A DNA stretch of 63,539 nt, counting the filler, from Pelomyxa schiedti (taxonomy: Eukaryota; Protista; Evosea): the NCBI GenBank assembly GCA_020536535.1. It is 10 parts of 10 records of this genome, joined end to end, with 100 filler letters (N's around TTAATTAATTAA, not from the genome) between each part and the next. Parts side by side here need not be neighbours in the genome. Positions count along the whole stretch, not along the records: positions 12,786 to 26,235 come from JAHLWZ010000219.1; 9 more parts are not named here. One strand, given 5' to 3'. Shown here in pieces: positions 2,891 through 26,235 of the stretch (position 1 is its first letter; the number at the start of each line of letters is the position of its first letter). The notes below the pieces were generated by a model. It did not search any database and was not told where the DNA came from. It worked only from the letters and a program-made list of their open reading frames with translations. Position numbers and translations under genes: made by a program.

Positions 2891-3310
2891 CTAAGCGTTC
2901 AAGAATGGCAATGAAAGCAGTCCCCTGTCCAGTACTATACACAAGTGGTTGACCCTTAACTCCGTGCTATAAGCATATATGTATTTAACTTGCACTGTCA
3001 CTTCAGCTACCGCTGCAACGTCATTGTGTACGTGCCAACAAATGGTGCAAATAGCATCTACCCTCTCGCACGCCTTTGTGCAGGAACAAGACAGGCAAGC
3101 TGAAGGAGCAACATATTCGCCATGAACATGCTGACAGTCCATGCACACATTATATCCGGGCCTGCACATGTGCTGTTTGTGGACCTGGCATCCACATCCG
3201 CACACCCCCGGAATGTTCTCTCCATTTTCATTGGCACAGGTAGCACTGTTATTCCTTTCCCTCCTGGCTGAAATTTCTCTTCAGAGCGACTTCTTTCCGG
3301 ACTTGGATAC
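2891..3310 (-). pseudogene. Degenerate duplicate of the Cys/His-rich first exon of the neighbouring ankyrin gene
   Basis: CGCGCQVHKQHMCRPGYNVCMDCQHVHGEYVAPSACLSCSCTKACER is shared with ORF 6256-7017. The upstream part carries deletions that disrupt the frame. Confidence 0.7.
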
Positions 3311-3397: not shown

Positions 3398-6300
3398 TCA
3401 TGAGCTGAGGAGCGCCCTTACGTTGTCACCCGAGGCCACTTCCACAGGCTTCCTACCTCTTAAATCCGTGGCATTCTTATCGGCGCCGTGCCTTAGCAGT
3501 ACCTCCACACACGCTGCGTTCCCGTCCTGCGCCGCGACGTGCAGTGCGCTCCTCGTTATCCCGCAGTTGGCTGATTCACTCTTAACAACTAGCCATGAAT
3601 CTGTGGTGGCACCTCTTTCCAGCAGAAGCTGCACTACTTCGACACTGCCTACACTGACTGCGTGACACAGAATTCCGCATGTCTTTCTTGACACTCTTAA
3701 GTCTGCTGTGAACTCGATCACTGAGTTCACGTTTTCGCCTGCGTTGATCAGTGCCCGGCATGCATCTACTTGGTTTGAGGCTACTGCGGCAACCATTGGG
3801 GATGTTCCTTCATATGCTTGCGTTCGGGATGCTCCATTGGACAGCAAGAATTCCAAGGTAGGCCCCATCTGCCTTGGTTCATTTGAGTATATTGCAGTGA
3901 ACAGAAGTTTCGTCATGAACTCTGAGTTGGCTTGAATTGCGTAGGGCTGCGCACTGAAAAGGGCCCTTAGAAGTGTTACATCACAGTAAGCGGTAACATT
4001 CATTATTAAGTCTTCAAATAGGCTCCTGGTAATGGCCGCAGGCTGCAAGCGTGAAAGAATGTCAAGAAACCGCTCGGTACTACATATTTCCAGTGCCGGC
4101 AACAAGTGTTTAACCTTTACTTGTGCTCCATTCAATATAAGCAGTCTAGCAACTTCATCACTCTCTCGCCTGAAGAAAAACCGAAAATTACAGGTGTATC
4201 TTTCACTGAGGCACTCATCAAGGGCTTCTTCAATACATGGCGAGCCAGCCGGTACGGTGCGAAGCAGTAAGGAAAGAGTGTTGGGATATGATTTCTGGGC
4301 AGTCACCTTGACGGCAGTCTCCTTGCCTGGACACCCAAGGTTCAACAGGAACTCCACACACCCGGTGAAGTTTCCTGATGCTGCTCCAATCAACGCCTGT
4401 TCAGTGAGAGGCACGTGGTTGTACTTGCTCCACAGCAGAGTGAGACACTCCAAGTGGCCTCCAGAAGCAGCGAGCACAACAGGTTGATTGTATGTCTGCT
4501 GCTGTGGGTCATGTGCGATTTCTCTGTCACCCAAGAGTTTCTGCAGAAGTGCAAGGTTCCCGACTTTAGAAACATACTGCAAAATTGACAAATTTCCAGA
4601 TAATGTTGAAGTGTAACGTGCATCATACCAAGCCTGATCTATCAAGCTCAAAGCACATTCCTGGTGCTCTTTCACAGCAGCAGATAACAGTGAAGGGCAG
4701 CAGGCATCATTCCACACGCACTCGGCACCCCTCCTCATGATCTGAATGCAACGGCGCACAGAAGTGTCCCACGGCTGCCCTGTAGTTTTAATTCTGCGTT
4801 CATCAACTGCTCCTTTCAGCCCTTCTTGGAGAATTGCTTCTCTTTCGGATGCTGAAAGGTTGCCCGCCCTCACCAACACCCTGACAACTTCATATTCTCC
4901 AGTTCTGATGGATCTGATGAGAAGTTTGTTGTCAGTATCAATTGCGCCAGCTTTCAGAATCAATTCCAGGCTCTCTGCTCCAACACTGGCAGATGCGGCT
5001 GCTACAATCCTACTCAATTCAGCTTTTAGGGATGTTTTATCATCACAGAGAGTATCTAGTAATTGCAATATATTCCGAGTGGGGACTATGCAGTTGCGTT
5101 CAGCAACATTCCTAAGCTCCGGAAATAATTTTCCGGAGATATCTTTCAAAGCCGTATTAGTTGCAAGAGAGCGCACATGATTACATAAGGCAGCAGTGAC
5201 ATCATTATCACTGGCCAAGAAAATTGCCGTGAAGCCCTAATTGCGACTTAGTGTTTTCGATGGAGAAGCCAGATACAAAAAGTACCCGGGAGGATTGTTT
5301 CCAAATATCCGCTCCTGCCGCCAGTAGTGCCCTAACAACTCCGAGGTCTGAGTAGTATGTTGCAGCTTGGAGTGGAGTAATCTCGCCAATCTCTTCGGAA
5401 ATGAATTCCACTGTGTCAATCCCCCTTATCCAAAATCTTGCACTGCACATAAGTGCGGCACACTGGCTATGCCTGGTATTAATTGCCTTAACCAATGACT
5501 TACTAATACAGCATTCACAGATTCCCAATGCCAGTTTTTCCTGCCTTTCTCTCATGAGGAATTCTTGTTGCCTGACTCTTTCTTGCTCTGCAAGTTCTTC
5601 CTGTCGTCTTCTCTGCAGTTCTTCTTCTTGCTTCAATCGAAGGTTCTCCGCTTTTCTATCTTCGATAACCCTCCGCAGAGATATTGCCTCTTCACTGAGG
5701 GGAATACTGGTTGGACCAGCAGCGGAAAGTCGAAGTATTTTCACTTCTTCGTGAACAGGTTCGGTTGCAGGCCTCACAACAGGTTGCCCTGCTCTCCCTG
5801 GTACAAGAGTGAGGAAAAGAGCTGCTGAGAAAGATACATACCTTCAACAGTGCTTGGTGCTGTGTGATTTGCGCGTTCTTTACACCCCAGTCCTTGCAGG
5901 GATCGTTGGCAACAACTCCATGAATAGGAATTCGATGCTCCTTGTATTTTGTGACAAAAGGGCATTTCTGACCGAGACACACGATTAAGAATAATACACC
6001 CGGAATGGTAACTGCACCGGGGATCCTTTATCGGCACAAGTAAGTCACCATTCTTCCATCCAACATAGTAATGACCGCACCTGCGTAAATTGTGTTAATA
6101 TTGCCTAGTTATTGGTTCCACTCACATTGTGCACTTGCAGGATAAGCTGGAAATCAGTTCGAGACAACAACCATGGATATCACTATCTGTACTTCCGCAG
6201 CATGTCCACATACCCGGGGCTATACTCCGCAAAGAGTATCCTGATGCATCACCGCTCATCGCTTTGATGTCAAGATAGCGCCCTGTGTGAACACTCTATG

Positions 6301-13468: not shown

Positions 13469-14774
13469 TCAAGAGGAAGACATGGCAGTCGGTTGTGTGT
13501 GATTGTGGAATGCTGCTGCGATGTTTGCGAGGCATCTGGCTACGTGACCGGTAACGTCGTAGTCAGTTGCGGGAGTATTGTTTGTCACCGTGCTTGTTGC
13601 TGCTGTCGACGGGTCAGGTCTGGAATTTGTGAACACGATCTCGGCACACGTCGCAAACACTTTGTCAATTGCCGAGAATGACGGCCGATCGATTTCTGTG
13701 TGAGTGTGAGGAGGGACAGAATGAAAAGAAAAACGAACCGAGGAGTGAGAGACAGGACTCAACAACGACAGAGAACAGACCAACGCACGCACGGGGCACG
13801 TTGTTCATCTTGGGCTGCGAACGCAACGCGGAAATGATTGCAATCTTCCGGCTGAGGCACTCCACGACGGGATAATCCCCAACGTCATCACAAAGCCGGT
13901 CCAATTCTATGTGTGTGTGAGAGGAGTTATTGTTGTAAACAACAAACCGGCAATTTCCGGGGCTGAGATTGATGCCCGCTGGACCCGCATAAATTCTGTT
14001 ACTTGGGCAGCGGACTTCGGCATATTTACTGGTGGCACTTCGCCTTGAAGAAGCTCACTCACCAAAACTGCAAACTCCCACATGTCTCCTTTTGAATGTG
14101 TTTGTTGAGGTGTGATGCAGAGTTAATATTGAGATGAAACTCAACAACATCCAAATACCTTGAATTCCGTAGTGCCCAGTGTGCATCTGTGGTGGCAAGT
14201 AAATTGGTGTTCCAGCCCCTTTCGTAAAACTCCCAATCATAGCTGCTTTACTCCCGCGGCCGATTTGGTGCTGCTGGAGGGCTCTTGATACTCCTTCATT
14301 TTCAGTTGGATTGAGTTGAGTGTGTTGAGGCATGTGTGTGTCTGTGTCAGAAAGTACCAAAGTCAGTTATTTTTGGAGTTCCACATGAATCGAGGAGAAC
14401 ATTGTTGCTGGTCAGGTCCCGGTGCATGTAGTTCCTCCTGTACTTTTTTAGTATTATTGCATTTTTTTGTTTTTAACCCAATCAACGTAAATGATATTTT
14501 TTAAAAAAGAGTGTAAGAAGAATTGAAATTGAATGAAACCTGTGAAGTGCAGTCATTCCTTTGGCAATTCCGGAAGAAACTGCCACAACTTCGGTGAATG
14601 TCAAATCTTTCTAATAATTGTGTGTATGATAGATATAGATTCATATTTACAATTTGAGTGAGTCCAACCAAAAACAAGTGGGAGGAAGAGGGTGCAAAAA
14701 ACAAACATGTTGAAGGAGCTGCCTGAGACTCATTTCCATGAGTTCAGACACGATCCAGAGTGACCCTGTGCTCG
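13469..14774 (-). CDS. TKL-type protein kinase paralogue A, 3' part (5' lost in gap)
   Basis: Spliced reading LWIVSELMEMSLRQLLQH, GIAKGMTALH, YMHRDLTSNNVLLD, KITDFG, GTPIYLPPQM, DRPSFSAI. Highly similar to 20320-21650. Confidence 0.8.
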
Positions 14775-15408
14775 NNNNNNNNNNNNNNNNNNNNNNNNNN
14801 NNNNNNNNNNNNNNNNNNNNNNNNNNNNNNNNNNNNNNNNNNNNNNNNNNNNNNNNNNNNNNNNNNNNNNNNNNGTTCTCACAACAACACAGGTCATTGA
14901 AGATTCCATGACGAGGAGAAGGGGCACAGCGGTATGTTTCCATTTCTCTTCTCCATTTTTCTTTTTCGACTTCTCACATTTGAAAACCAGGTGGTATTGC
15001 CGATGTCAGCAGAATGTGTGTGTGTGCGGGTTGGCTCCATTCCACCGGTATTCCTCTTCTTGAGTCCCCCCAAATATATAACTCCCCTCTAGGTCCTTTT
15101 CTGCATTCAAGCTGTATGTCGGTATTGAGGCCCTGTGACTTTCAGCAATGGCATTTTCAGCAGCTCAGCCACTGGTAAGTTTCACCTTGTACAGTTGGTG
15201 GTGGACATGCCTTGACAGCCTGTTCACCATTGTAAATCCCCCTCTCCCTTTTCATCGCACCCCCACTCAAACATAATTATCCCATACTGACACCACTCAG
15301 GTACCCCAAGTGAGTGCGCCAGCGAGGTGGCCAACTGCACAGCTCACTTTTTTTCCTTGTACCCAATGTATTGAAAGTAAAAACACCCTTCTCGCCCACA
15401 CTAACAAG

Positions 15409-16189: not shown

Positions 16190-17961
16190 CTTTGTTGTCT
16201 ACAACAACAAACTGATTTTGTCCTTGATAAATGCACGACAACCAGGGCATTTCCTCATGAATGTGGCACACTGTTTGTTTTTTGTTTTGGTGTGTAGTCA
16301 GTTGGGATGTTAAGAAAAGAGAAGAGAATAACAAACAACACAGACCTGAGAGCACACTACAACGTGACTACAAGGATGAAACTGAACGTTTGGTGGCCTC
16401 TCATCACATTCCATGCAGACGTTGTGGTTGTTGTTCACCACAACTGAGGAAACAGATGTTTGTGTCACTGCAGTGACCGTGGCTGTGCATCCTGGGGTGT
16501 CAGCAGTGCGGCATGTTGCTGCTTGAGCCGGCTCAACATCACTCCAAGGCAATGGCAATGGGAAAGGGGGTGAGCTGGGGCGTGTGTTGTGGAGAATTTC
16601 TTCAATGTGAGCACCAAGAGGATCCCAGGTTGCAGTAACTATCGCCAACTGTGCGCCACTAATGAGATCCTTGATCTGAAATGACACAGTCCCCTCTATG
16701 GAGCAACTGCAGGGTGTAGAATAAACTCCTGTGCCTTCAGGTGACAGAAGATCTACTGTCGTATCTTGAATGCAGTTGCAGGGAGTATCCAAGTCAGAAG
16801 CACAAAACACCTGTTGGTTGATTCCCAGTTTGGTTGGAGTTTCGTTGTTAAGGGTGGCAACCAGGTGTGAGGGCTTGTGTGTGACCAGTCTTGTGTATTC
16901 TGACGAAAAGGTCTTCACCCTTTGAGATACAGTGTTGTACACCTTGAAGCCCTTCTGAAGTGAATGTATTGTTATCATTTCCTCAGCAGATACCCACAGC
17001 ATGTCAATTGGAGATGAATAAGGCAGGGGAACCCTTTTGGCAAACACGGCGGTGCCGCTTTCCAGACTATGAGGCAGGTCAACAAACAATACGTAGTTCC
17101 CCCGGAGCAGCTCCTTTACCATCACTGCCAACACATCTCCCTCGCCAGGTGGAAACCCACTTTCAATGAGATACAGGTCCCCCAGGTTTATGTCAAACTC
17201 AGGATTCTTGGGTTCACCATTCTCAATTTTCCACAGGGTAAGAATGTTGAACGAGCCATGCACCAGCCACTTGGAGTTGCAATACCATTCAGTGCTGTAA
17301 ATCCCTGATTGTAGGATACTGACAAACCGACCTTTGTTGTTCATTACACATTCTTCGTTTTTCAGAGCCACAACAAAGTTGCTGCTCCCTGGAATTCCGC
17401 ACTGTATTCCCTTCAACATCGGGGGGATCCAGCACGCGCAGCTCACAACTCCAAGCGTGGGTGACAGCTCCAAGGACACACAACATCTCACATTCCGAGT
17501 TGTATCACCATTGCCAACACTCTTGTCAACGAGGTCAAGAACGTGCCTTGTGGGACATACCACCCACCTCCTTCCAAGCATCTCCAGAACGTGGACAGAT
17601 CCCCTCAGCAGTTGTACGGCACAGCCGGGGCCACATCGGCGGTCAAAAAATATCCCACATGCCAAGGCAACGAACTGAGCGCGAGCGGTGACGGGTTGGA
17701 GGCTCGGCGTAGGGAGCCACTGTTGTTAGATACACCGACATTCTGACTTTTTGGCAAGGTAGTTGAAGGATCCATCATCAAGTTGTCAGTGAAACCTGGT
17801 TTTGTGGTGGTCATTTTGGGTTCATTTGTTTGTGAGGATATTATCATTAACATACCTTTGAGTGGTGATTCAAGAAGCATTCCTCCTTCATCAATCAGCA
17901 GTTGTGGTTTGATTGGGGCTCCTTCCAGATTCTGAATCAGCTTATGACTCTTCAAGTACAA
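16190..17961 (-). CDS. Lineage-family domain protein with C-terminal RING finger
   Basis: 451-aa ORF ending CMECDERPPNVQFHPCSHVVVCSQ; after an intron CATFMRKCPGCRA completes a C3HC4-type RING. 5' boundary uncertain. Confidence 0.65.
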
Positions 17962-18450
17962 TAAACTCTGGAGTGTATTTTTTGAGCTGGAGACGGAGCT
18001 AAGTGGCCAGAGTGAATGCCCGGTTCAATTCTGGCTTGATTGTTGTTTTTGCTTTGGATTTTTCACTTCTCATTCTTCTCTGATGGGAAAAGAACCTCCT
18101 CTTCCATTTTAAGTTCGTTCAGAGTTTCATACAGCTTGTTGAGTGCCTCAATGTGTTGCTTTTTTTTTTCAGTAATTGATATTTGTTTTAGAACTTAATC
18201 TATGACTTTGCATCACTCACCTCTTTGTTAAAGATTACGAAAAATAGGATGGATAGTCCACACCTCAATCTGTTGATGATGTTCAAACTGTGGCAACGAT
18301 GATCCCATCAGATGGAGTGCTGGCGCAGTACTTGCACAACTTGTTGGCTGTTGGTGGAATTCACAATATTATCATAATTCATATTATCATATCAATTCCC
18401 AGCTGTTACACATTTCAGTATTAAGATCATTCACAAATGCTGGATCTCTA

Positions 18451-18890
18451 TCACATTAGGATTCCCGCCAACGGAGCATGACCCCCAGAGGAGAGGGTCA
18501 GAACACCCTCGCCACAGCACCCCCAACCGTCCCCACGTTCTCTGTCTTGTTGAGGCTGGGTGAAAGTGCCTGCAAAGCTGTCACCGTTTGGCCACCTCCT
18601 CGTTCCCTTCTTTGGAACACCCAGCTCCCACCGTGAATGACGATCCATCCCTTGACCACACCTTTGTCCCTTGGCCGTTCTCCTTTCCACACACCCACTG
18701 GCCAACATACCTGTCACCGTTTGCCCACAGCCTCACGCCCAGACCATGGAACATGTCATCCTTCCACTCCCCAGACACCCCACCCCTGCATCTCGGGCCC
18801 CGTGATGGCGCCAAACCCCCACTGCCGTCGTAGGTGCACCGCTGCCGTGCCACTTGAACGTGCCCTTGCCGTCGCGCCTGCCGGGCGGAA
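18451..18890 (-). pseudogene. MORN-repeat coding fragment, frameshifted, abutting a retroelement
   Basis: GEWKDDMFHGLGVRLWANGDRYVGQWVCGKENGQGTKVW MORN motifs. Homologous to 59450-59700. Confidence 0.7.
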
Positions 18891-20260
18891 TAAAGAAGCA
18901 GCAACCTTAGTGCGATGTATCGAAAAACATTGGATTAATACTGAAATGTGTAACAGCTGGGGGTATTCATAGAAATGTGGTTACTGCATATCATCCACAA
19001 TCAAACGTTAAAATCCTGTTAAGAATGTGAAGCATTGTGTCGAGAAGTACATCGAAAGGAATCTGCAAGATTGGGATCAACAACTGCACTGGATTGAATT
19101 TGATATCAACACTACACCATCTGTTTTGACTGGAGTCACTCTGTTTTTCCTAGACCATATTCGTGATCCAAGAATACCTCTAGATACCTTGCTGTTAGAT
19201 TCATTCCCAAAAGAAGAGAAGGATAACATGACGAGAGCCCAAGAACAATTGTTGACTAGACAAAACATCCGGGAAATAGTTCGTGAACAACAAGCACAAG
19301 AAAAAGCCAGACAACGACCTGAGATGATGACAAGATTGAAGAAAGCTAGTGATGATTTAGAAATAGGTGTTCGAGTTTGGAGAGAGGTACCTAAAACTCA
19401 ACAACAATCTGGATATCCGAAGTATGAAGGACCCTATAGGATTGTAGCTAAGCCTACAGAGTTGACAAGAGAACTGTACATACCAAGTAGTAGCGCGCAT
19501 CCTATTGTGCATATTGATGCCTGAAGCCATACTTGGATAGTGACCTTCGTGTTAAAGCAGCTGAAGAAGAGCAACTTCCATTTGTACCTCAAGAACCGGC
19601 CAAAATCCCAGAACGAATTACTATGGATAAAATAAGGGATGGAGTGATCCAATATAGGTTGAAATGGAAAGGATTGTCACCAAAGAAGAAGTAGAACCGC
19701 GAATCATGAGAATCTACAAACTCAAACAAGCATGAAAGAAACTACTGCCGGTGAAACGACCACAAAAACCACGAGCAGTAAAACAACCCAACATCAAAAC
19801 GCTCACGTAAAAAGGACCAACAATCAAAACACAAACATTACTACAACTAAACAAACCATTACAACTGAAGTTTCAAATGACACCTCGCCACTGACACCCT
19901 CAATGACCAGATCTACACCGACACCGGAAACACGTCACCCTCCACATTGTCCAACGAGTTCTCCTATTTCACCGAACTTTTTTTAATATTTGGCTGAATA
20001 ATCAACGGACCGCACGCTGTCATTTTCGTTATCATCGCTCAGTATCAGGAGATCTGAGTGTTGCGAGGACGAAACAGGCTTAGCAGGAGATGTGAAGGGG
20101 TTTTCGTGCAACGGTGATGGCTAATGCTTATGTCAGCCTCCAGGGCATTCATGCTAAGCCCATTTGTTAAAGTAATTAACACAAAAATACCGGTTGTTTT
20201 GGAGTCGTATTGTTATACCTCCGAACATCACAAAACACCACACCCACACGTGTCAGCACA
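18890..20260 (+). mobile_element. 5'-truncated Ty3/Gypsy chromovirus-type LTR retrotransposon (integrase, GPY/F, chromodomain, PPT, 3' LTR 20091-20260)
   Basis: TAYHPQSN; DWDQQLHWIEFDINTTPSVLTG; KYEGPYRIV...HPIVHI; chromodomain-like PERI...GVIQYRLKWKG (~19600-19690). GAGGACGAAAC...AGCAGGAGA precedes a TGTG...CACA LTR. The flank after 20260 resumes homology with the 13408+ paralogous region. Confidence 0.85.
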
Positions 20261-20319
20261 AGCCTCGTTCTCCTTCAGGCTTCTGTACACCATACGGGTA
20301 AATATCCCTCTATGTGGGG

Positions 20320-23300
20320 TCAAGAGGAAGACCTGGCAGTTGGTTCTGTGTGATTGCGGTGGTCAGGGAATGCTGCTGCGATGTTTGCGAGGCACCTGGT
20401 TATGTGACTGGTAACGTCGTCGTCAGTTGTGGGAGTCTTGTTTGTCACCGTGCTTGTTATTGCTGCCGTTGTTGTTGCTGTCGACGGGTCAGCTCTGGAA
20501 TTTGTGAACACGATCTCGGCACACGTCACCAACACTTTGTCAATTGCCGGGAATGCCGGTCGATCGATTTCTGTGTGTGTGAGGAGGGACAGAATGGAAA
20601 GAAAAACGAACCGAGGAGTGAGAGGCAGGATTCAACAACGACAGAGAACAGACCAACGCACGCACGGTGCACGTTGATCATCTTGGGCTGCGAACGTAAC
20701 GCGGAAATGATTGCAATCTTCCGGCTGAGGCACTCCACGACGGGATAATCCCCAACGTCATCACAAAGCCGGTCCAATTCTGTGTGTGTGAGGAGTTGGC
20801 TTTTATTGTTGTAAACAACAAACCGGCAATTTCCGGGGCTGAGAGTGATGCCCGCTGGACCCTCATAAATTCTGTTACTTGGGCACCGGACTTCGGCATC
20901 TTTACTGGTGGCACTTCGCCTTGAAGAAGTTCACTCACCAAAACTGCAAACTCCCACATGTCTCCTTTTGAATGTGTTTGTTTATGTGTGATGTAAAGTT
21001 AATATTGAGGGAACTATCAACAGGATGAACACAACAACATCCAAATACCTTGAATTCCGTAGTGCCCAGTGTGCATCTGTGGTGGCAAGTAAATTGGTGT
21101 TCCAGCCCCATTTGTAAAACTCCCAATCATAGCTGGTTTACTCCCGCGGCCGATTTGGTGCTGGAGGGCTCTTGATACTCCTTCATTTTCAGTTGGATTG
21201 AGTTGAGTGTGTTGAGCATGTGTGTGTCTGTGTCAGAAAGTACCAAAGTCAGTTATTTTTGGAGTTCCACAAGAATCGAGGAGAACATTGTTGCTGCTCA
21301 GGTCCCGGTGCATGTAGTTCCTCCTGTGTTTTTTATTATTATTGCATTTTTGGTTTTTACAGCCAATCAACGGAAATGATATTATTTTTAAAAAGAAGAA
21401 TTGAAATTGAATGAAACCTGTGAAGTGCAGTCATTCCTTTGGCAATTCCGGAAGAAACTGCCACAGCTTCAGTGAATGTCAAATCTTTCTAATAATGTGT
21501 ATGATGATATAGATTCATATTTACAATTGAGTGAGTCCAACCAAAAACAAGTGGGAGGAAGAGGGTGCAAAAAACAAACATGTTGAAGGAGCTGCCTGAG
21601 ACTCATTTCCATGAGTTCAGACACGATCCAGAGTGACCCTGTGCTCGTGACGCAAGTTCCAAGGCATCTCACAATGTTTGGGTGCCTCAAGCTTGACGAA
21701 ACCTGGTGAGTTGATGGATGAATGTTTAGAACGCAAGATGATGAGAGACAAAACTCCGTATCACTCACCAGAGCTTCCTGCTGAAACCTGGTGATGTTGA
21801 ACTCAGACTTGATGGCGTCGTGAAGTGCTTTAATTGCCACAAACGTTGGTGTTCTTTCTGATGAGGATGATGATGAGGAGGAAGTGGTAATCACGTTGTG
21901 ATCATGGCAGGTGCACTTGAAAACAGTTCCATACGATCCGACTCCAAGTGTGGAAACAACTTTCAGGTCTTTCTCTTGGATTGACATGGTTGATTTGATT
22001 CGAACCTTGATTTGAACAACACCTCTGTTTCTGTTGCTGCTGCCGCTGTCTTGTTGTTGCTGTCGTTGTTGAATGTCACCCAAGGTAATGGATGAATCGA
22101 TCGGCAGCAGTTCCTCAGGTTTGTTGTTTTCTGAACCGAGAGTGAAAATCACTTGTTGTGTTGGTTCAACTCCAAACTTCCTTGAAACGATAAGCTTCAC
22201 AATCTTTTTTGAACAAAACAACCAGTTAGAAACATCGCAAACAACGAGAAAAAAAGGGAGGTGGGGGAAGCTTCAAAAAGAAAAGAAAGGGCAGAGCTTC
22301 AAGAGAGGAAAGCACCATCTGAAGGGGACAGGATCCACACACAATTTCATCAAAAGAGGGAAGGTCCTCAAACGTGATCCTGAGTTGCGATCGCTTGCAG
22401 CCGTTGGTCTTATTGTTTTCAGGGAGAATGTTGCGCCACGTGCCTTCTCCTTGTTCAACATGTGACATAACATGATTTGTGTCTGTATTGACAGAATTAG
22501 AATTGTTGGTGTGGTGCCGTGTTATTATATGCTGCATGTATGTGGGTTGAGAAAAAAAGGAGGGGATGCAGTGTGTTGAGTGGGCAGCAAGCACAAACAG
22601 TGTTGGAGATCACGAAATCTTTGTTGGTCAGATGCTGTCTCATCACAAAACCTTTTCAGGTTCTGGGCACTTTCTTCCTCCAATGTTGTTATGTGCGCCT
22701 CCAGTTCCATGAGTTCTGTTTTTGGAAAAAGGGGAAAAAAAACCCAGTGAGGAGGGAGAATGATGAGTTCAACTGGAGGAGGAAGGTGTGTTCAAACCCT
22801 TGTTCTTTGCAGTCATGTCGGACACAGTTTTTTCTTGCAAGCTTTGGAGCTCCATCTGTGTGGATGCATGTTGTTAAGAGATTACTTATTGTCAAGGCAA
22901 ACAACAACACACCTCTGAATTATGTTTCCCTTGATGATGTGCACATGAGATGATGAGAAACGCAAAAAAGAAGAAGGAAGGAGGAAAGGGGAGCACAAAC
23001 ATTGTTGTTGAAGCTCACGAAATCTTTGTTGGTTGTCTGTTTCTCTTTCTTCATAGATTCGTTTAATTTCTTTAATTCTTTGTTGGGTGGTCGCATGTTG
23101 TTTTCTTTCTTCATGGAGAAGATTCAGATTCTTTGTGTTTTCTTCCTCCAATTGTGTGATTCTTGCCTTCAGTTCTGTGATCTCATCTGTTGAACACAAA
23201 GTAATTTGCATTTTCATTTGAGGAAGGGGTTTTTCACTAAACTCTTCAGCTGCTTCGCCTCGATTTCCCAGCAGTCTCTCTCTTGTTTTCTGACGTTGTT

Positions 23301-23737
23301 GATGTCATCACCTTCGTCAAGAGCTTTGGGGAGCACTTTGCTGGTCGCCATTGGTGTGGTTGGTGATGGATCGTTTGTAGCAGAGGCCGGTCTTGGATGT
23401 GGTTGTTGGGATGTTTTGGGAGAGGTGACTGCCTGCGTTATTGCTGATGTTGTGGCTGTACACACGGCTTGGAACACTTGACGCACTTTATCATTTTTCG
23501 AGCTCTCCAGTGCTGTTTTTCCCTCCTTGTTCTGTGCCGACAGGAAAATTAAAACACATATCAATCAAATAGGGGGAAAACAACCTTGATGTGAGTGCTG
23601 ATACCCACACAAGATAGAAGTTGTTTCACAATTGCAACGTTTCCTTCTCTGCAGGCAAGATGAAGCGTGGTCTGAGAGAGAGGGAGACGAAAATTAAGTT
23701 TTGTGTCAAGCATCAAATAAAGGGTACATACATCACC
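20320..23737 (-). CDS. Ankyrin - coiled coil - ubiquitin-like(?) - TKL kinase (paralogue B); 5' end runs into the microexon array and gap
   Basis: Exon 23585-23671 TTLHLACREGNVAIVKQLLSCVGISTHIK, then NKEGKTALE. Coiled-coil exons ELKARITQLEEEN and ELEAHITTLEEES. Kinase LGVGSYGTVFK, VAIKAL, LRHPNIVRCLG, HRDLSSNNVLL, KITDFG, DRPAF. Confidence 0.85.
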
Positions 23738-23934
23738 CTGCCAATTTGAAAGAGACCCCAAAAGATATGTGAGGAACAACAAGAACAAGAAAAAAGGTCA
23801 TACTTCCTGAAAAATAAGAAGGTGAGCACAAAGATTCAAGGAGTGGAGTTCATACAATCTGCAGCAGTGAAAAAATAGCATAAAAATTGCGGAAAGTTAG
23901 AACAAAAAGCTGCCAGGGAGTGGGTACTTACTCC
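23732..23934 (-). other. Four non-repetitive phase-0 microexons: GGA (23932-23934), ATT (23856-23858), GAA (23804-23806), GGTGAT (23732-23737)
   Basis: Minus strand reads AAG|GGA|GTAAGT, CAG|ATT|GTATGA, CAG|GAA|GTATGA, CAG|GGTGAT|GTATGT. Separated by pyrimidine-rich introns of 73, 49, 66 and 60 nt. Product G-I-E-G-D-T aligns with N-K-E-G-K-T of the next ankyrin repeat. Confidence 0.75.
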
Positions 23935-23959
23935 CTTTATGGTATGAAAAATGATATAA

Positions 23960-25509
23960 AGTGTAACAGAGAGAAATTGAAGGTCAGAAATTGATGAATG
24001 AAAAGGGGTTGAGGAGCAGTTACACACTCGCTGAGTTTATCACAGAGCAAAGCAAAGAGAGAGAAATTGAAGCAAGTCAACAAAAAGGGTTGGGGAGCAG
24101 TTACACACAAACTAAACATTCCATAGAGAAGGAAAGAGAGAGAAATTGAAGCAAGTCAGAAATTGATGAATAAACGCAATAAAACAAGGTTGAGGAGCAG
24201 TTACACACATCCTGAGTTTATCACAGAGCGAAGCAAAGAGAGAGGAATTGAAACAAATCAGGAATTGATTAATAAACGCATTAAAAAGAGTTGGGGAGCA
24301 GTTACACACAAACTAAACATGCCACAGAGTGAAGCAAAGAGAGAAAAATTGAAGCAAGTCAGAAATTGATGATTAAACGCAATAAAAAAGGGTTGGGGAG
24401 CAGTTACACACTCGCTGAGTTTATCACAGAGCAAAGCAAAGAGAGAGAAATTGAAGCAAGTCGGGAATTGATGATTAAACGCAATAAAAAAGGGTTGGGG
24501 AGCAGTTACACACAAACTAAACATGCCACAGAGTGAAGCAAAGAGAGAGAAATTGAAGCAAGTCAGAAATTGATGAATAAACACAAGAAAAGGGTTGGGG
24601 AGCAGTTACACACTCCCTGAGTTTATCACAGAGTGAAGCAAAGAGAGAGAAATTGAAATAAATCAGAAATTAGTGATTAAACAGGGTTGGAGAGCAGTTA
24701 CACACTGCCTGAGTTTATCACAGAGCAAAGTAAAGAGAAATTGGGCAAGTCAGAAATTGATGAATAAACACCATAAAAAAGGGTTGGGGAGCAGTTACAC
24801 ACAAACTAAACATGCCACAGAGTGAAGCAAAGAGAGAAATTGAAGCAAATCAGAAATTGATGGTTTTCAAGTTGGGGGGCAGTTACACACTCCCTGAGTT
24901 TATCACAGAGCAAAGAGAGAGAAATTGAGGCAAATCAGAAATTAATTAATAAACACAATAAAAAAGGGGTGGGGAGCAGTTACACACTCACTGAGTTTAT
25001 CACAGAGTGTAGGAAAGAGAGAGAAATTGAAGCAAGTCAGAAATTGATGATTAAACGCAATAAAAAAGGGTGGGGAGCAGTTACACACAAGCTAAACATG
25101 CCACAGAGTGAAGGAAAGAGAGAAAAATTGAAGCAAGTCATAAATTGATGATTAAATGTAATAAAAAAGGGGTGGGAGCAGTTACACACAAACTAAACAT
25201 GCCACAGAGTGAAGCAAGCAGAGAGAAATTGAAGCAAGTCATAAATTGATGATTAAACGCAATAAAAAAAGGTTGAGGAGCAGTTACACACATCCTGAGT
25301 TTATCACAGAGCGAAGCAAAGAGAGAGAAATTGAAGCAAGTCAACAAAAAGGGTTGGGGAGCAGATACACACAAACTAAACATTCCAGAGAGAAGGAAAG
25401 AGAGAGAAATTGAAGCAAGTCAGAAATTGATGAATAAACGCAATAAAACAAGGTTGAGGAGCAGTTACACACATCCTGAGTTTATCACAGAGCGAAGCAA
25501 AGAGAGAGG
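23960..25509 (-). repeat. Tandem array of 16 units (~80-102 bp), each an intron plus a 3-nt microexon; two unit subtypes
   Basis: Every unit reads (minus strand) polypyrimidine...AAACTCAG or ATGTTTAG | NNN | GTGTGT. AG and GT are invariant in all 16 units, while NNN takes 7 values. The array is cut by the gap at 25510. Confidence 0.9.
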
Positions 25510-25609
25510 NNNNNNNNNNNNNNNNNNNNNNNNNNNNNNNNNNNNNNNNNNNNNNNNNNNNNNNNNNNNNNNNNNNNNNNNNNNNNNNNNNNNNNNNNNN
25601 NNNNNNNNN

Positions 25610-26235
25610 TTGAAGAAGTTCACTCACCAAAACCGCAAACTCCCACATGTCTCCTTTTGAATGTGTTTGTTTATGTGTGATGCAGAGTTAATATTGAGTG
25701 AACTATCAACAGGATGAAACTCAACAACATCCAAATACCTTGAATTCCGTAGTGCCCAGTGTGCATCTGTGGTGGCAAGTAAATTGGTGTTCCAGCCCCT
25801 TTTGTAAAACTCCCAATCATAGCCGGTTTACTCCCGCGGCCGATTTGGTGCTGCTGGAGAGCTCTTGATACTCCTTCATTTTAAGTTGGATTGAGTTGAG
25901 GCATGTGTGTCTGTGTCAGAAAGTACCAAAGTCAGTTATTTTTGGAGTTCCACAAGAATCGAGGAGAACATTGTTGCTGCTCAGGTCCCGGTGCATGTAG
26001 TTCCTCCTGTTTTTTTAGTATTATTGCATTTTTTGTTTTCCAGCCAATCAACGTAAATGATATTTGTTTAAAAAGAGTGCAAGAAGAATTGAAATCGAAT
26101 GAAACCTGTGAAGGGCAGTCATTCCTTTGGCAATTCCGGAAGAAACTGCCACAACTTCGGTGAATGTCAAATCTTTCTAATAATTGTGTGTATGATAGAT
26201 ATAGATTCATATTTACAATTTGAGTGAGTCCAACC
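25610..26235 (-). CDS. TKL kinase paralogue C, internal fragment
   Basis: Near-identical to 20930-21545 (HRDLSSNNVLLD, KITDFG). Bounded by a gap and a linker. Confidence 0.75.

Follow-up and report, generated by a model that had tools for sequence, protein, structure and literature searches.

Candidate exons of three to six nucleotides beside tandemly arrayed intron-like units in an ankyrin-kinase gene of Pelomyxa schiedti

Introduction

Plants possess ultra-short microexons, of 1–15 nt, whose misannotation has been documented (Yu et al., 2022; PMC8831610). Their conservation extends to the donor hexamer, and gene predictors overlook them, so that annotated proteins have wrong or shortened N-termini; two adjacent ones, of 5 and 12 nt, have been validated by RT-PCR (PMC8831610). 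The sites described here in Pelomyxa schiedti would resemble them in being tiny coding exons set between ordinary introns and conserved together with their donors. They are unlike those of plants in that four sites in a row (3, 3, 3, and 6 nt), known here from the sequence, are each in phase 0, in that a tandem array of 9–16 cassettes built in a like manner lies upstream, and in that the host is an archamoebid.

Both in intron gain by tandem duplication and in the spread of introner elements, intron-like units bring their own splice sites and multiply. The units of P. schiedti share these two properties, splice sites of their own and multiplication, with introners and duplicated introns. They differ from introners in being arranged, at the loci compared, head to tail in tandem rather than dispersed, without terminal inverted repeats (a search of the array units for inverted termini found none), and in that the four terminal spacers are unrelated.

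At a ratchet point the AG of one splice site is followed by the GT of the next with nothing between them, so that the mRNA keeps no bases. In long introns of Drosophila, a 3′ splice site that stands against a 5′ splice site serves the stepwise removal of short segments (PMC6110457), and the P. schiedti sites resemble this recursive splicing in having adjoining 3′ and 5′ splice sites within a long interval. Here, at least three bases lie between AG and GT and no triplet starts with GT, so that each step would leave a codon, unlike at a ratchet point.

Data and layout of the gene

The window, i.e., the whole stretch of DNA that we analysed (63,539 nt, filler included), was drawn from the P. schiedti assembly GCA_020536535.1. 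The ankyrin-kinase gene treated here (the study copy) lies in a 13.4-kb piece of it, and all the features of this gene are on the minus strand (Table 1). According to the genome paper, P. schiedti has 7.43 introns per gene, its gene models were made with Augustus, PASA, and EVM, and its scaffolding was RNA-based (P_RNA_scaffolder), which accounts for the 100-N gaps in the assembly (PMC8887013).

The ankyrin exon at 23671–23585 matches Pfam Ank (PF00023) over model positions 4–27 (E 3.6e-5), and the exon that follows the 53-nt intron starts with NKEGKTALE. With this NKEGK exon as the query (profile-free HMMER) six proteins were matched, the best of them annotated P. schiedti proteins. Word-index protein searches with ORFs of 75 and 96 aa returned P0001 or nothing, P0001 as a query returned itself alone, and the ankyrin exon had no match in a metagenome scan. 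The putative ubiquitin-like segment within 20300–23190 was called from the sequence alone, and Pfam gave no match to it. The intron at 21181–21243 of the kinase gene appears as a joint in the RNA runs. Among the proven or likely introns in 20781–23584 (minus strand) the donors are mostly GTTTGT, GTTGTT, GTTTCA, GTACTT, and GTATTT; those at the microexon sites are unlike them, being the consensus-like GTAAGT or GTATGW.

Table 1. Features of the study copy, in window coordinates, and the arrays of three paralogous loci, in coordinates of those loci.
Feature	Position	Strand	Remarks
N gap of scaffold, 100 N	25510..25609	none	cuts the array; start exon and 28-aa ankyrin exon hidden here
Tandem array	24028..25509	-	16 intron-like units
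Hybrid unit, ends aaag	23935..24027	-	5′ part array-like, 3′ 30 nt unique
Candidate microexon GGA (Gly)	23932..23934	-	donor GTAAGT
Spacer/intron 1, 73 nt	23859..23931	-	GTAAGT ... CTAAC ... pyrimidine tract ... CAG
Candidate microexon ATT (Ile)	23856..23858	-	donor GTATGA
Spacer/intron 2, 49 nt	23807..23855	-	same length in L003 (by eye)
Candidate microexon GAA (Glu)	23804..23806	-	donor GTATGA
Intron 3, 66 nt	23738..23803	-	without RNA cover at 23679-23802; both flanks covered
Candidate fourth site, two readings	23728..23737	-	6-nt GGTGAT (Gly-Asp) or 10-nt with ATG
Intron 4, starting at 23731 (60 nt) or 23727 (56 nt)	23672..23727	-	ends in strong pyrimidine tract and CAG
Ankyrin exon, 87 nt, 29 aa, phase 0 at both ends	23585..23671	-	codes TTLHLACREGNVAIVKQLLSCVGISTHIK; Pfam Ank match
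53-nt intron, GTTGTT donor	23532..23584	-	P0001 and P0002 proteins read straight over the junction
NKEGK exon with rest of fourth ankyrin repeat and low-complexity linker	23243..23531	-	P0001 70%, P0002 63% identical
Remaining gene: two coiled-coil exons, putative ubiquitin-like segment, protein kinase domain	20300..23190	-	P0005 model joins parts
Array of L002	3720..4680
Array of L004	1830..3200
Array of L003	3298..4200

Four candidate microexons

In the study copy all four sites have an AG directly 5′ and a GT directly 3′ on the coding strand (aaag-GGA-gtaagt, gcag-ATT-gtatga, tcag-GAA-gtatga, and gcag-GGTGAT-gtatgt), after which ctctcag-ACC opens the ankyrin exon. The spacers that separate them from one another and from this exon measure 73, 49, 66, and 60 nt, as against ca. 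45–80 nt for the other introns of the gene; their pyrimidine fraction is 0.55–0.95 and one of them contains CTAAC. The pattern AG-NNN-GTAWGW is found four times on both strands of the whole 13.4-kb piece, and three of the four occurrences fall within 140 nt here. Under a first-order Markov model of the strand 0.017 sites are expected per 263 nt and P(≥4) is ca. 3e-9, a figure to be read bearing in mind that the pattern was set after the data had been seen. The four-site cluster is real and far beyond chance, and a chance origin was rejected on the pattern counts together with the Markov expectation. Recent slippage as the source of the four spacers was rejected too, because they have no significant similarity to one another (one alone, 23931–23859, is weakly array-like, z 3.6). 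This agrees with the sequence-only reading, which had described dissimilar introns with canonical donors and had considered chance or recent slippage unlikely; its coordinates, donors, residue count, and E-G alignment were all correct as well. A known RNA family or stable structure (a snoRNA-cluster host) was rejected, the units having no Rfam match at E≤1 and no stable fold (fold z-score 0.41).

The fourth site has an alternative reading, GGTG-ATG-TAT/GTACCC, in which the ATG is at 23733–23731, the donor is at 23727, and the following intron is of 56 nt. A start at the in-frame ATG 23714–23712, with intron 4 not spliced, was rejected since the RNA depth agrees with an exon that begins at 23671, and also on the ground that paralogues carry insertions of ca. 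30–40 nt, including a poly-C run, in this stretch of intron 4.

The first reading of the four sites gives 3+3+3+6 = 15 nt, all in phase 0, and a peptide, GIEGD, with the same five-residue length as NKEGK of the next repeat and with E-G likewise at positions 3–4. What would precede it in the protein can be seen at L004 and L002 (L003 is damaged), where two exons lie on the same strand 5′ of the array. The first starts with ATG (MMTTT...), and the second, of 84 nt in phase 0 and with a GTAAGG or GTATAA donor, codes 28 residues, TALH...MNVDVNSQ, that match Pfam Ank over positions 4–30 (E 3e-6 and 8e-6 in the paralogues). The exon at 23671–23585 begins at Ank position 4, and therefore five residues are missing; 28 + 5 = 33 residues is the ankyrin period, and E-G-D falls by count on Pfam Ank positions 1–3. 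The introns of the gene point to the same length. The intron that separates repeats 1 and 2 lies directly before T, and that separating repeats 3 and 4 is placed five residues ahead of T. At the boundary of repeats 2 and 3 introns occupy both positions, and an exon of 15 nt is hence to be expected. The four sites sum to exactly this value, although picking the last four sites partly builds in the five-residue count. On the L003/L005 contig, three neighbouring members of the family are each annotated as one gene of 736–896 aa with ankyrin repeats and kinase, and their ankyrin region is intron-free. The exon at 23671–23585 aligns best to residues 151–179 of one of these intronless relatives (52% identity), which reads ...RVDVNLMDEGQ-TALHVAC..., i.e., with E-G-x before T-x-L-H, to be compared with I-E-G-D-TTLH.

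We regard as plausible, if unproven and somewhat short of an even chance, that this is one ankyrin-kinase gene in which four maintained coding microexons restore an ankyrin loop. The four sites would then be splice-site pairs held by selection and spliced as exons, and they would form the end of a long series of short intron-like units placed between two ankyrin-coding exons of a single gene. This gene belongs to a large P. schiedti family whose members have ankyrin repeats at the N terminus, then a coiled coil and a protein kinase. GGA, ATT, GAA, and GGTGAT would code a G-I-E-G-D loop ahead of T-T-L-H, which brings the repeat to 33 residues. An exon of 3 nt is too short for factors to sit on both splice sites and hence the introns would have to be removed one after another, probably the downstream ones first, with the array cassettes skipped or partly included.

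Conservation among paralogous loci

Four paralogous loci and one extension were compared with the study copy. In all four loci an array is followed by the same four sites. L001, L002, and L004 are close copies, too similar to the study copy to tell exon from intron; the contrast between sites and spacers rests on one divergent paralogue, L003. In this comparison AG, microexon, and six donor bases are identical at 47 of 53 positions (89%), the spacers at 99 of 212 columns (47%, with 73 further gap columns), and the ankyrin exon at 68 of 87 (78%); the difference between sites and spacers has a Fisher p of 1e-8. Outside the exon, an identity to L003 of at least 10/11 is reached only at the four sites and at the ankyrin acceptor, the GAA site being identical at 11/11. 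The spacers of L003 measure ca. 88, 49, 68, and 62 nt (by reading the sequences). The sites are thus islands of conservation, and of the proposal that the tiny-exon architecture is old and maintained, the part on the age and maintenance of the sites is supported.

The same reading had suggested comparing paralogues for shared intron positions with differing triplets. The positions of the sites are shared by the four loci; the triplets are mostly the same, with GGA, ATT, and GGT unchanged in five of five copies and GAA in four of five (L002 has CAA), and GAT replaced in L003 by GAC, which is synonymous in the frame proposed. L003 itself has CGG in place of CAG before ATT, i.e., it lacks the AG there, and a 13-nt deletion causes a frameshift in its ankyrin exon 2 (its lesions map to 3150–3250 and 4300–4420). 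It may be a decaying copy, and this would make it a weaker witness of selection.

Transcripts and annotated gene models

Transcripts were sought in Logan contigs (three single-cell RNA runs and a further run that is probably DNA), the RNA cover of this locus being very thin; all that we say of splicing in 23585–23862 is arithmetic from binned depths rather than from listed junctions. No spliced string and no joints within 23585–23862 were found in these low-cover contigs. One RNA contig of run X1 (depth 7.23) covers, by its depths, the 60 nt of 23803–23862 and downstream exons; this contig and a second one (depth 3.77) cover, again as judged from depths, exactly the 87-nt ankyrin exon, and neither covers 23679–23802. 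The match of an X1 contig stops at 23533. The depths fit the use of a GAA/GT donor, a G as the next base (GGTGAT...), and an acceptor at 23671. The upstream piece of the contig of depth 7.23 includes ATT with the 4 nt on its 5′ side and the 49-nt spacer; it appears to retain the spacer between ATT and GAA, and ATT was therefore no separate exon in that molecule. The molecule could be either a splicing intermediate, with the downstream introns out first, or a transcript that starts near 23862. The array and spacer 1 have almost no RNA cover (the last 4 nt of spacer 1 are covered) even though they are multi-copy in the DNA run, so they are either removed from the RNA or not transcribed.

The GenBank models of the paralogues (PMC8887013) agree with our reading in the T-A/T-L-H exon, the 53-nt intron, and the downstream exons, and differ from it in starting at the ATG of the fourth site or elsewhere and in treating the upstream ankyrin exons as a separate gene. 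Models P0001 (Pelo_19132) and P0002 start with MYTALHLAC, the annotated start of L002 being the ATG inside the fourth site. Among the paralogues the downstream models begin variously with MY..., with a read-through start, or with a later Met, an inconsistency such as is expected of ab initio guesses. The upstream models, of 136, 134, and 110 aa (L004 591–1877, L002 2705–4002, and L003 2847–3372), take in the start and ankyrin exons and continue into the first unit of the array (ATT GTG TGT ...) as far as a stop. These models are probably the cut-off halves of the downstream kinase genes, and the public annotation of P. schiedti probably splits the genes of this family at the array, an error comparable in kind to the one described in plants.

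These same models invite a different interpretation, which we consider rather unlikely and yet the best of the alternatives, namely that the downstream half is transcribed as a separate unit. It would start at ca. 23862, with a 5′ UTR exon to 23804 and a 10-nt start-codon exon, GGTGATGTAT, followed by the donor GTACCC at 23727; the protein would begin M-Y-T-T-L-H, GGA and ATT would not be exons, and the conserved islands would be accounted for by the first donor and the start-codon exon, together with an element of the promoter or start site. The MYTALHLAC starts of P0001 and P0002 speak for it, as does the string ATG-TAY/GT in the study copy, L001, L002, and L004, but L003 has ACG instead of ATG, and GAT followed by GTATGT makes the ATG-TAT/GT reading almost automatic. 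Its donor is made credible by the proven use of GTACTT elsewhere in the gene. The upstream piece of the X1 contig, at 23803–23862, is collinear with the genome over ATT and the spacer and ends 4 nt upstream of ATT, and AT-rich, TATA-like stretches are seen (by eye) a few tens of nt 5′ of this triplet, both in the study copy and in L003; the end at 23862 may, however, be an assembly break, as L002-type copies differ at 23863–23864. A separate unit would also leave the two-repeat ankyrin exons upstream as an orphan mini-gene running into the array, whereas in all complete members of the family a single gene has both ankyrin and kinase, and neither the splice-like conservation of the array (pyrimidine tract and AG, GTRYGT) nor the match of E-G-D to the intronless relative would find an explanation. 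Were it nevertheless correct, the locus would offer no more than a start-codon exon of 10 nt, with a conserved region upstream, and would be of modest interest.

The tandem array

The array units are of ca. 80–102 nt and of two alternating types, A and B, and end in a pyrimidine tract with AG, after which come three variable bases and GTGTGTAACTGC; all 16 carry ag-NNN-gtgtgt. When the units of the study copy, L001, L002, and L004 are pooled, the 11 A-type units do not differ at all in the 18 nt before AG or in the 12 nt that follow NNN, and the 30 B-type units hardly differ there, while the triplet varies in both types, with an entropy of ca. 1 bit. Across unit types and paralogues, what is retained is the pyrimidine tract and AG in the left block and GTRYGT alone in the right one. 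By these retained motifs the conservation pattern of the blocks is that of splice sites. The array-type paralogues each have an array of their own, with 9–16 units and a differing mix of unit types. An opposite, plus-strand coding of the array was rejected, as the ORFs are broken and the unit lengths are not multiples of 3.

The unit at 24027–23935 had been called a hybrid and proves to be one, with an array-like 5′ part (z 18) and a unique 3′ tail of 30 nt that is also present in L002 and L004. The suggestion that the array is a recent amplification of one cassette fares less well. Although each array is locally homogenised, L003 has a diverged array at the same place, and so the array is older than was supposed. 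We also observed that 23915–23936 (minus strand) and the A-type units contain GGGAGT ... ACTCCC, a possible 6-bp hairpin over the GGA triplet and donor; array units with GAT have TCCT in place of TCCC downstream, which may be covariation or simply shared descent.

The triplets of the array of the study copy would read D, F, D, F, L, stop, G, F, A, G, F, R, F, D, F, and R. The stop is a TGA at 24990–24988, and with it not all the cassettes of this copy can be coding. In the paralogues, a greedy chain search from the VDVNSQ exon to the TALH exon gave chains of 22 codons in L004, 18 in L002, and 18 in L003, all without stops. Exon sizes were limited in this search to 3, 6, 9, 12, and 15 nt, so the 3n length of 9-nt exons is not independent evidence, and the absence of stops is not significant given the triplet composition. 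Nothing was found to distinguish the last four sites from the 16 of the array beyond their unique spacers and conserved triplets.

That the four sites run unbroken into 16 units of the same AG-NNN-GT layout is also what one would see if they were relics, i.e., if an intron with its three flanking bases had been copied in tandem and the oldest copies had decayed save for the splice motifs, the 2-kb interval now being a single intron or left unprocessed and the study copy perhaps a dead gene. The weak resemblance of 23931–23859 to the array and the TGA triplet are in line with such a history, as are the many truncated or rearranged paralogues (P0002 is without the kinase N-lobe, L003 has its frameshift) and the depths of hundreds that the family reaches in the DNA run. 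Neutral decay, on the other hand, would not yield an identity of 89% at the sites against 47% in the spacers, nor would it keep the triplets at the sites while those of the array drift, and VNSQ joined straight to TTLH would give a 28-residue repeat without its loop. We consider relics improbable.

A bolder version of the coding-microexon reading seems to us distinctly improbable. In it the interval is fully transcribed and the cassettes, each with an intron of ca. 100 nt and an exon of 3n nt, are spliced stepwise, placing a variable number of one-codon exons in the loop between two ankyrin repeats. As every cassette would keep the frame, changes of copy number or alternative inclusion would give loops specific to a paralogue or an isoform (18–22 residues in L002, L003, and L004). 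In the study copy, splicing the array cassettes in this way would take in the TGA. If true, it would be a generator of diversity made of tandemly multiplied introns, and a live case of intron proliferation by tandem duplication.

Finally, the invariant blocks that flank a variable 3-nt spacer about every 100 nt on one strand could suggest half-sites of protein-binding repeats in an upstream regulatory array that resembles splice sites only in appearance, a very improbable option since the left block changes in sequence and yet keeps its pyrimidine tract and AG, the right one keeps GTRYGT only, these retained features are those that splice sites need rather than those of one sequence-specific factor, and the spacer lengths match the introns of the gene.

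A proposed single gene with coding microexons

What leads us to favour one gene with four coding microexons is the architecture of the family, the exact gap of five residues, the E-G match, and the selective conservation of sites and triplets. It is weakened by a very low prior, by the X1 contig that keeps the spacer between ATT and GAA, by the ATG, by the TGA cassette, and by the dependence of the conservation on L003 as a single divergent and possibly decaying paralogue. If the sites are spliced as we read them, this would be, to our knowledge, the densest run of minimal exons described, with four exons of 3–6 nt in 200 nt and up to 16 cassettes before them. It would be a test of the spliceosome on exons too short for factors at both ends, and a case of introns multiplying in tandem within a coding loop.

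The gene family and its surroundings

Three tandem, near-identical kinase copies lie on the minus strand, at 20300–22221, 13900–14943, and 25640–26235. In the DNA run the kinase family reaches depths of hundreds, with many contigs 90–95% alike; the ankyrin-kinase family is very large and recently expanded. At the N gap (25510–25609) the middle of a kinase exon of copy 3 (...WEFAVLVSELLQ) abuts the array, and both the 3′ part of this copy and the initial exons of the gene after it are missing there. Since scaffolding relied on RNA pairs and the kinase copies are near-identical, this join may be spurious. The coiled-coil exon is duplicated in the study copy (23000–23190 and 22600–22716, minus strand); joints in DNA contigs (22646>23123 and 22813>23100) correspond to paralogues with a single coiled-coil exon.

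On the plus strand, 19027–19700 contains ORFs with strings typical of the C-terminus of Ty3/gypsy integrases and of a chromodomain; the ORF at 19027–19524, which has the integrase-like strings and was the one scanned, had no Pfam match at E<0.01. Between the kinase copies, 16310–18904 (minus strand) holds a separate gene with MORN repeats (Pfam E 6e-13), after which a 451-aa open frame follows that ends in a RING-like cysteine-rich motif.
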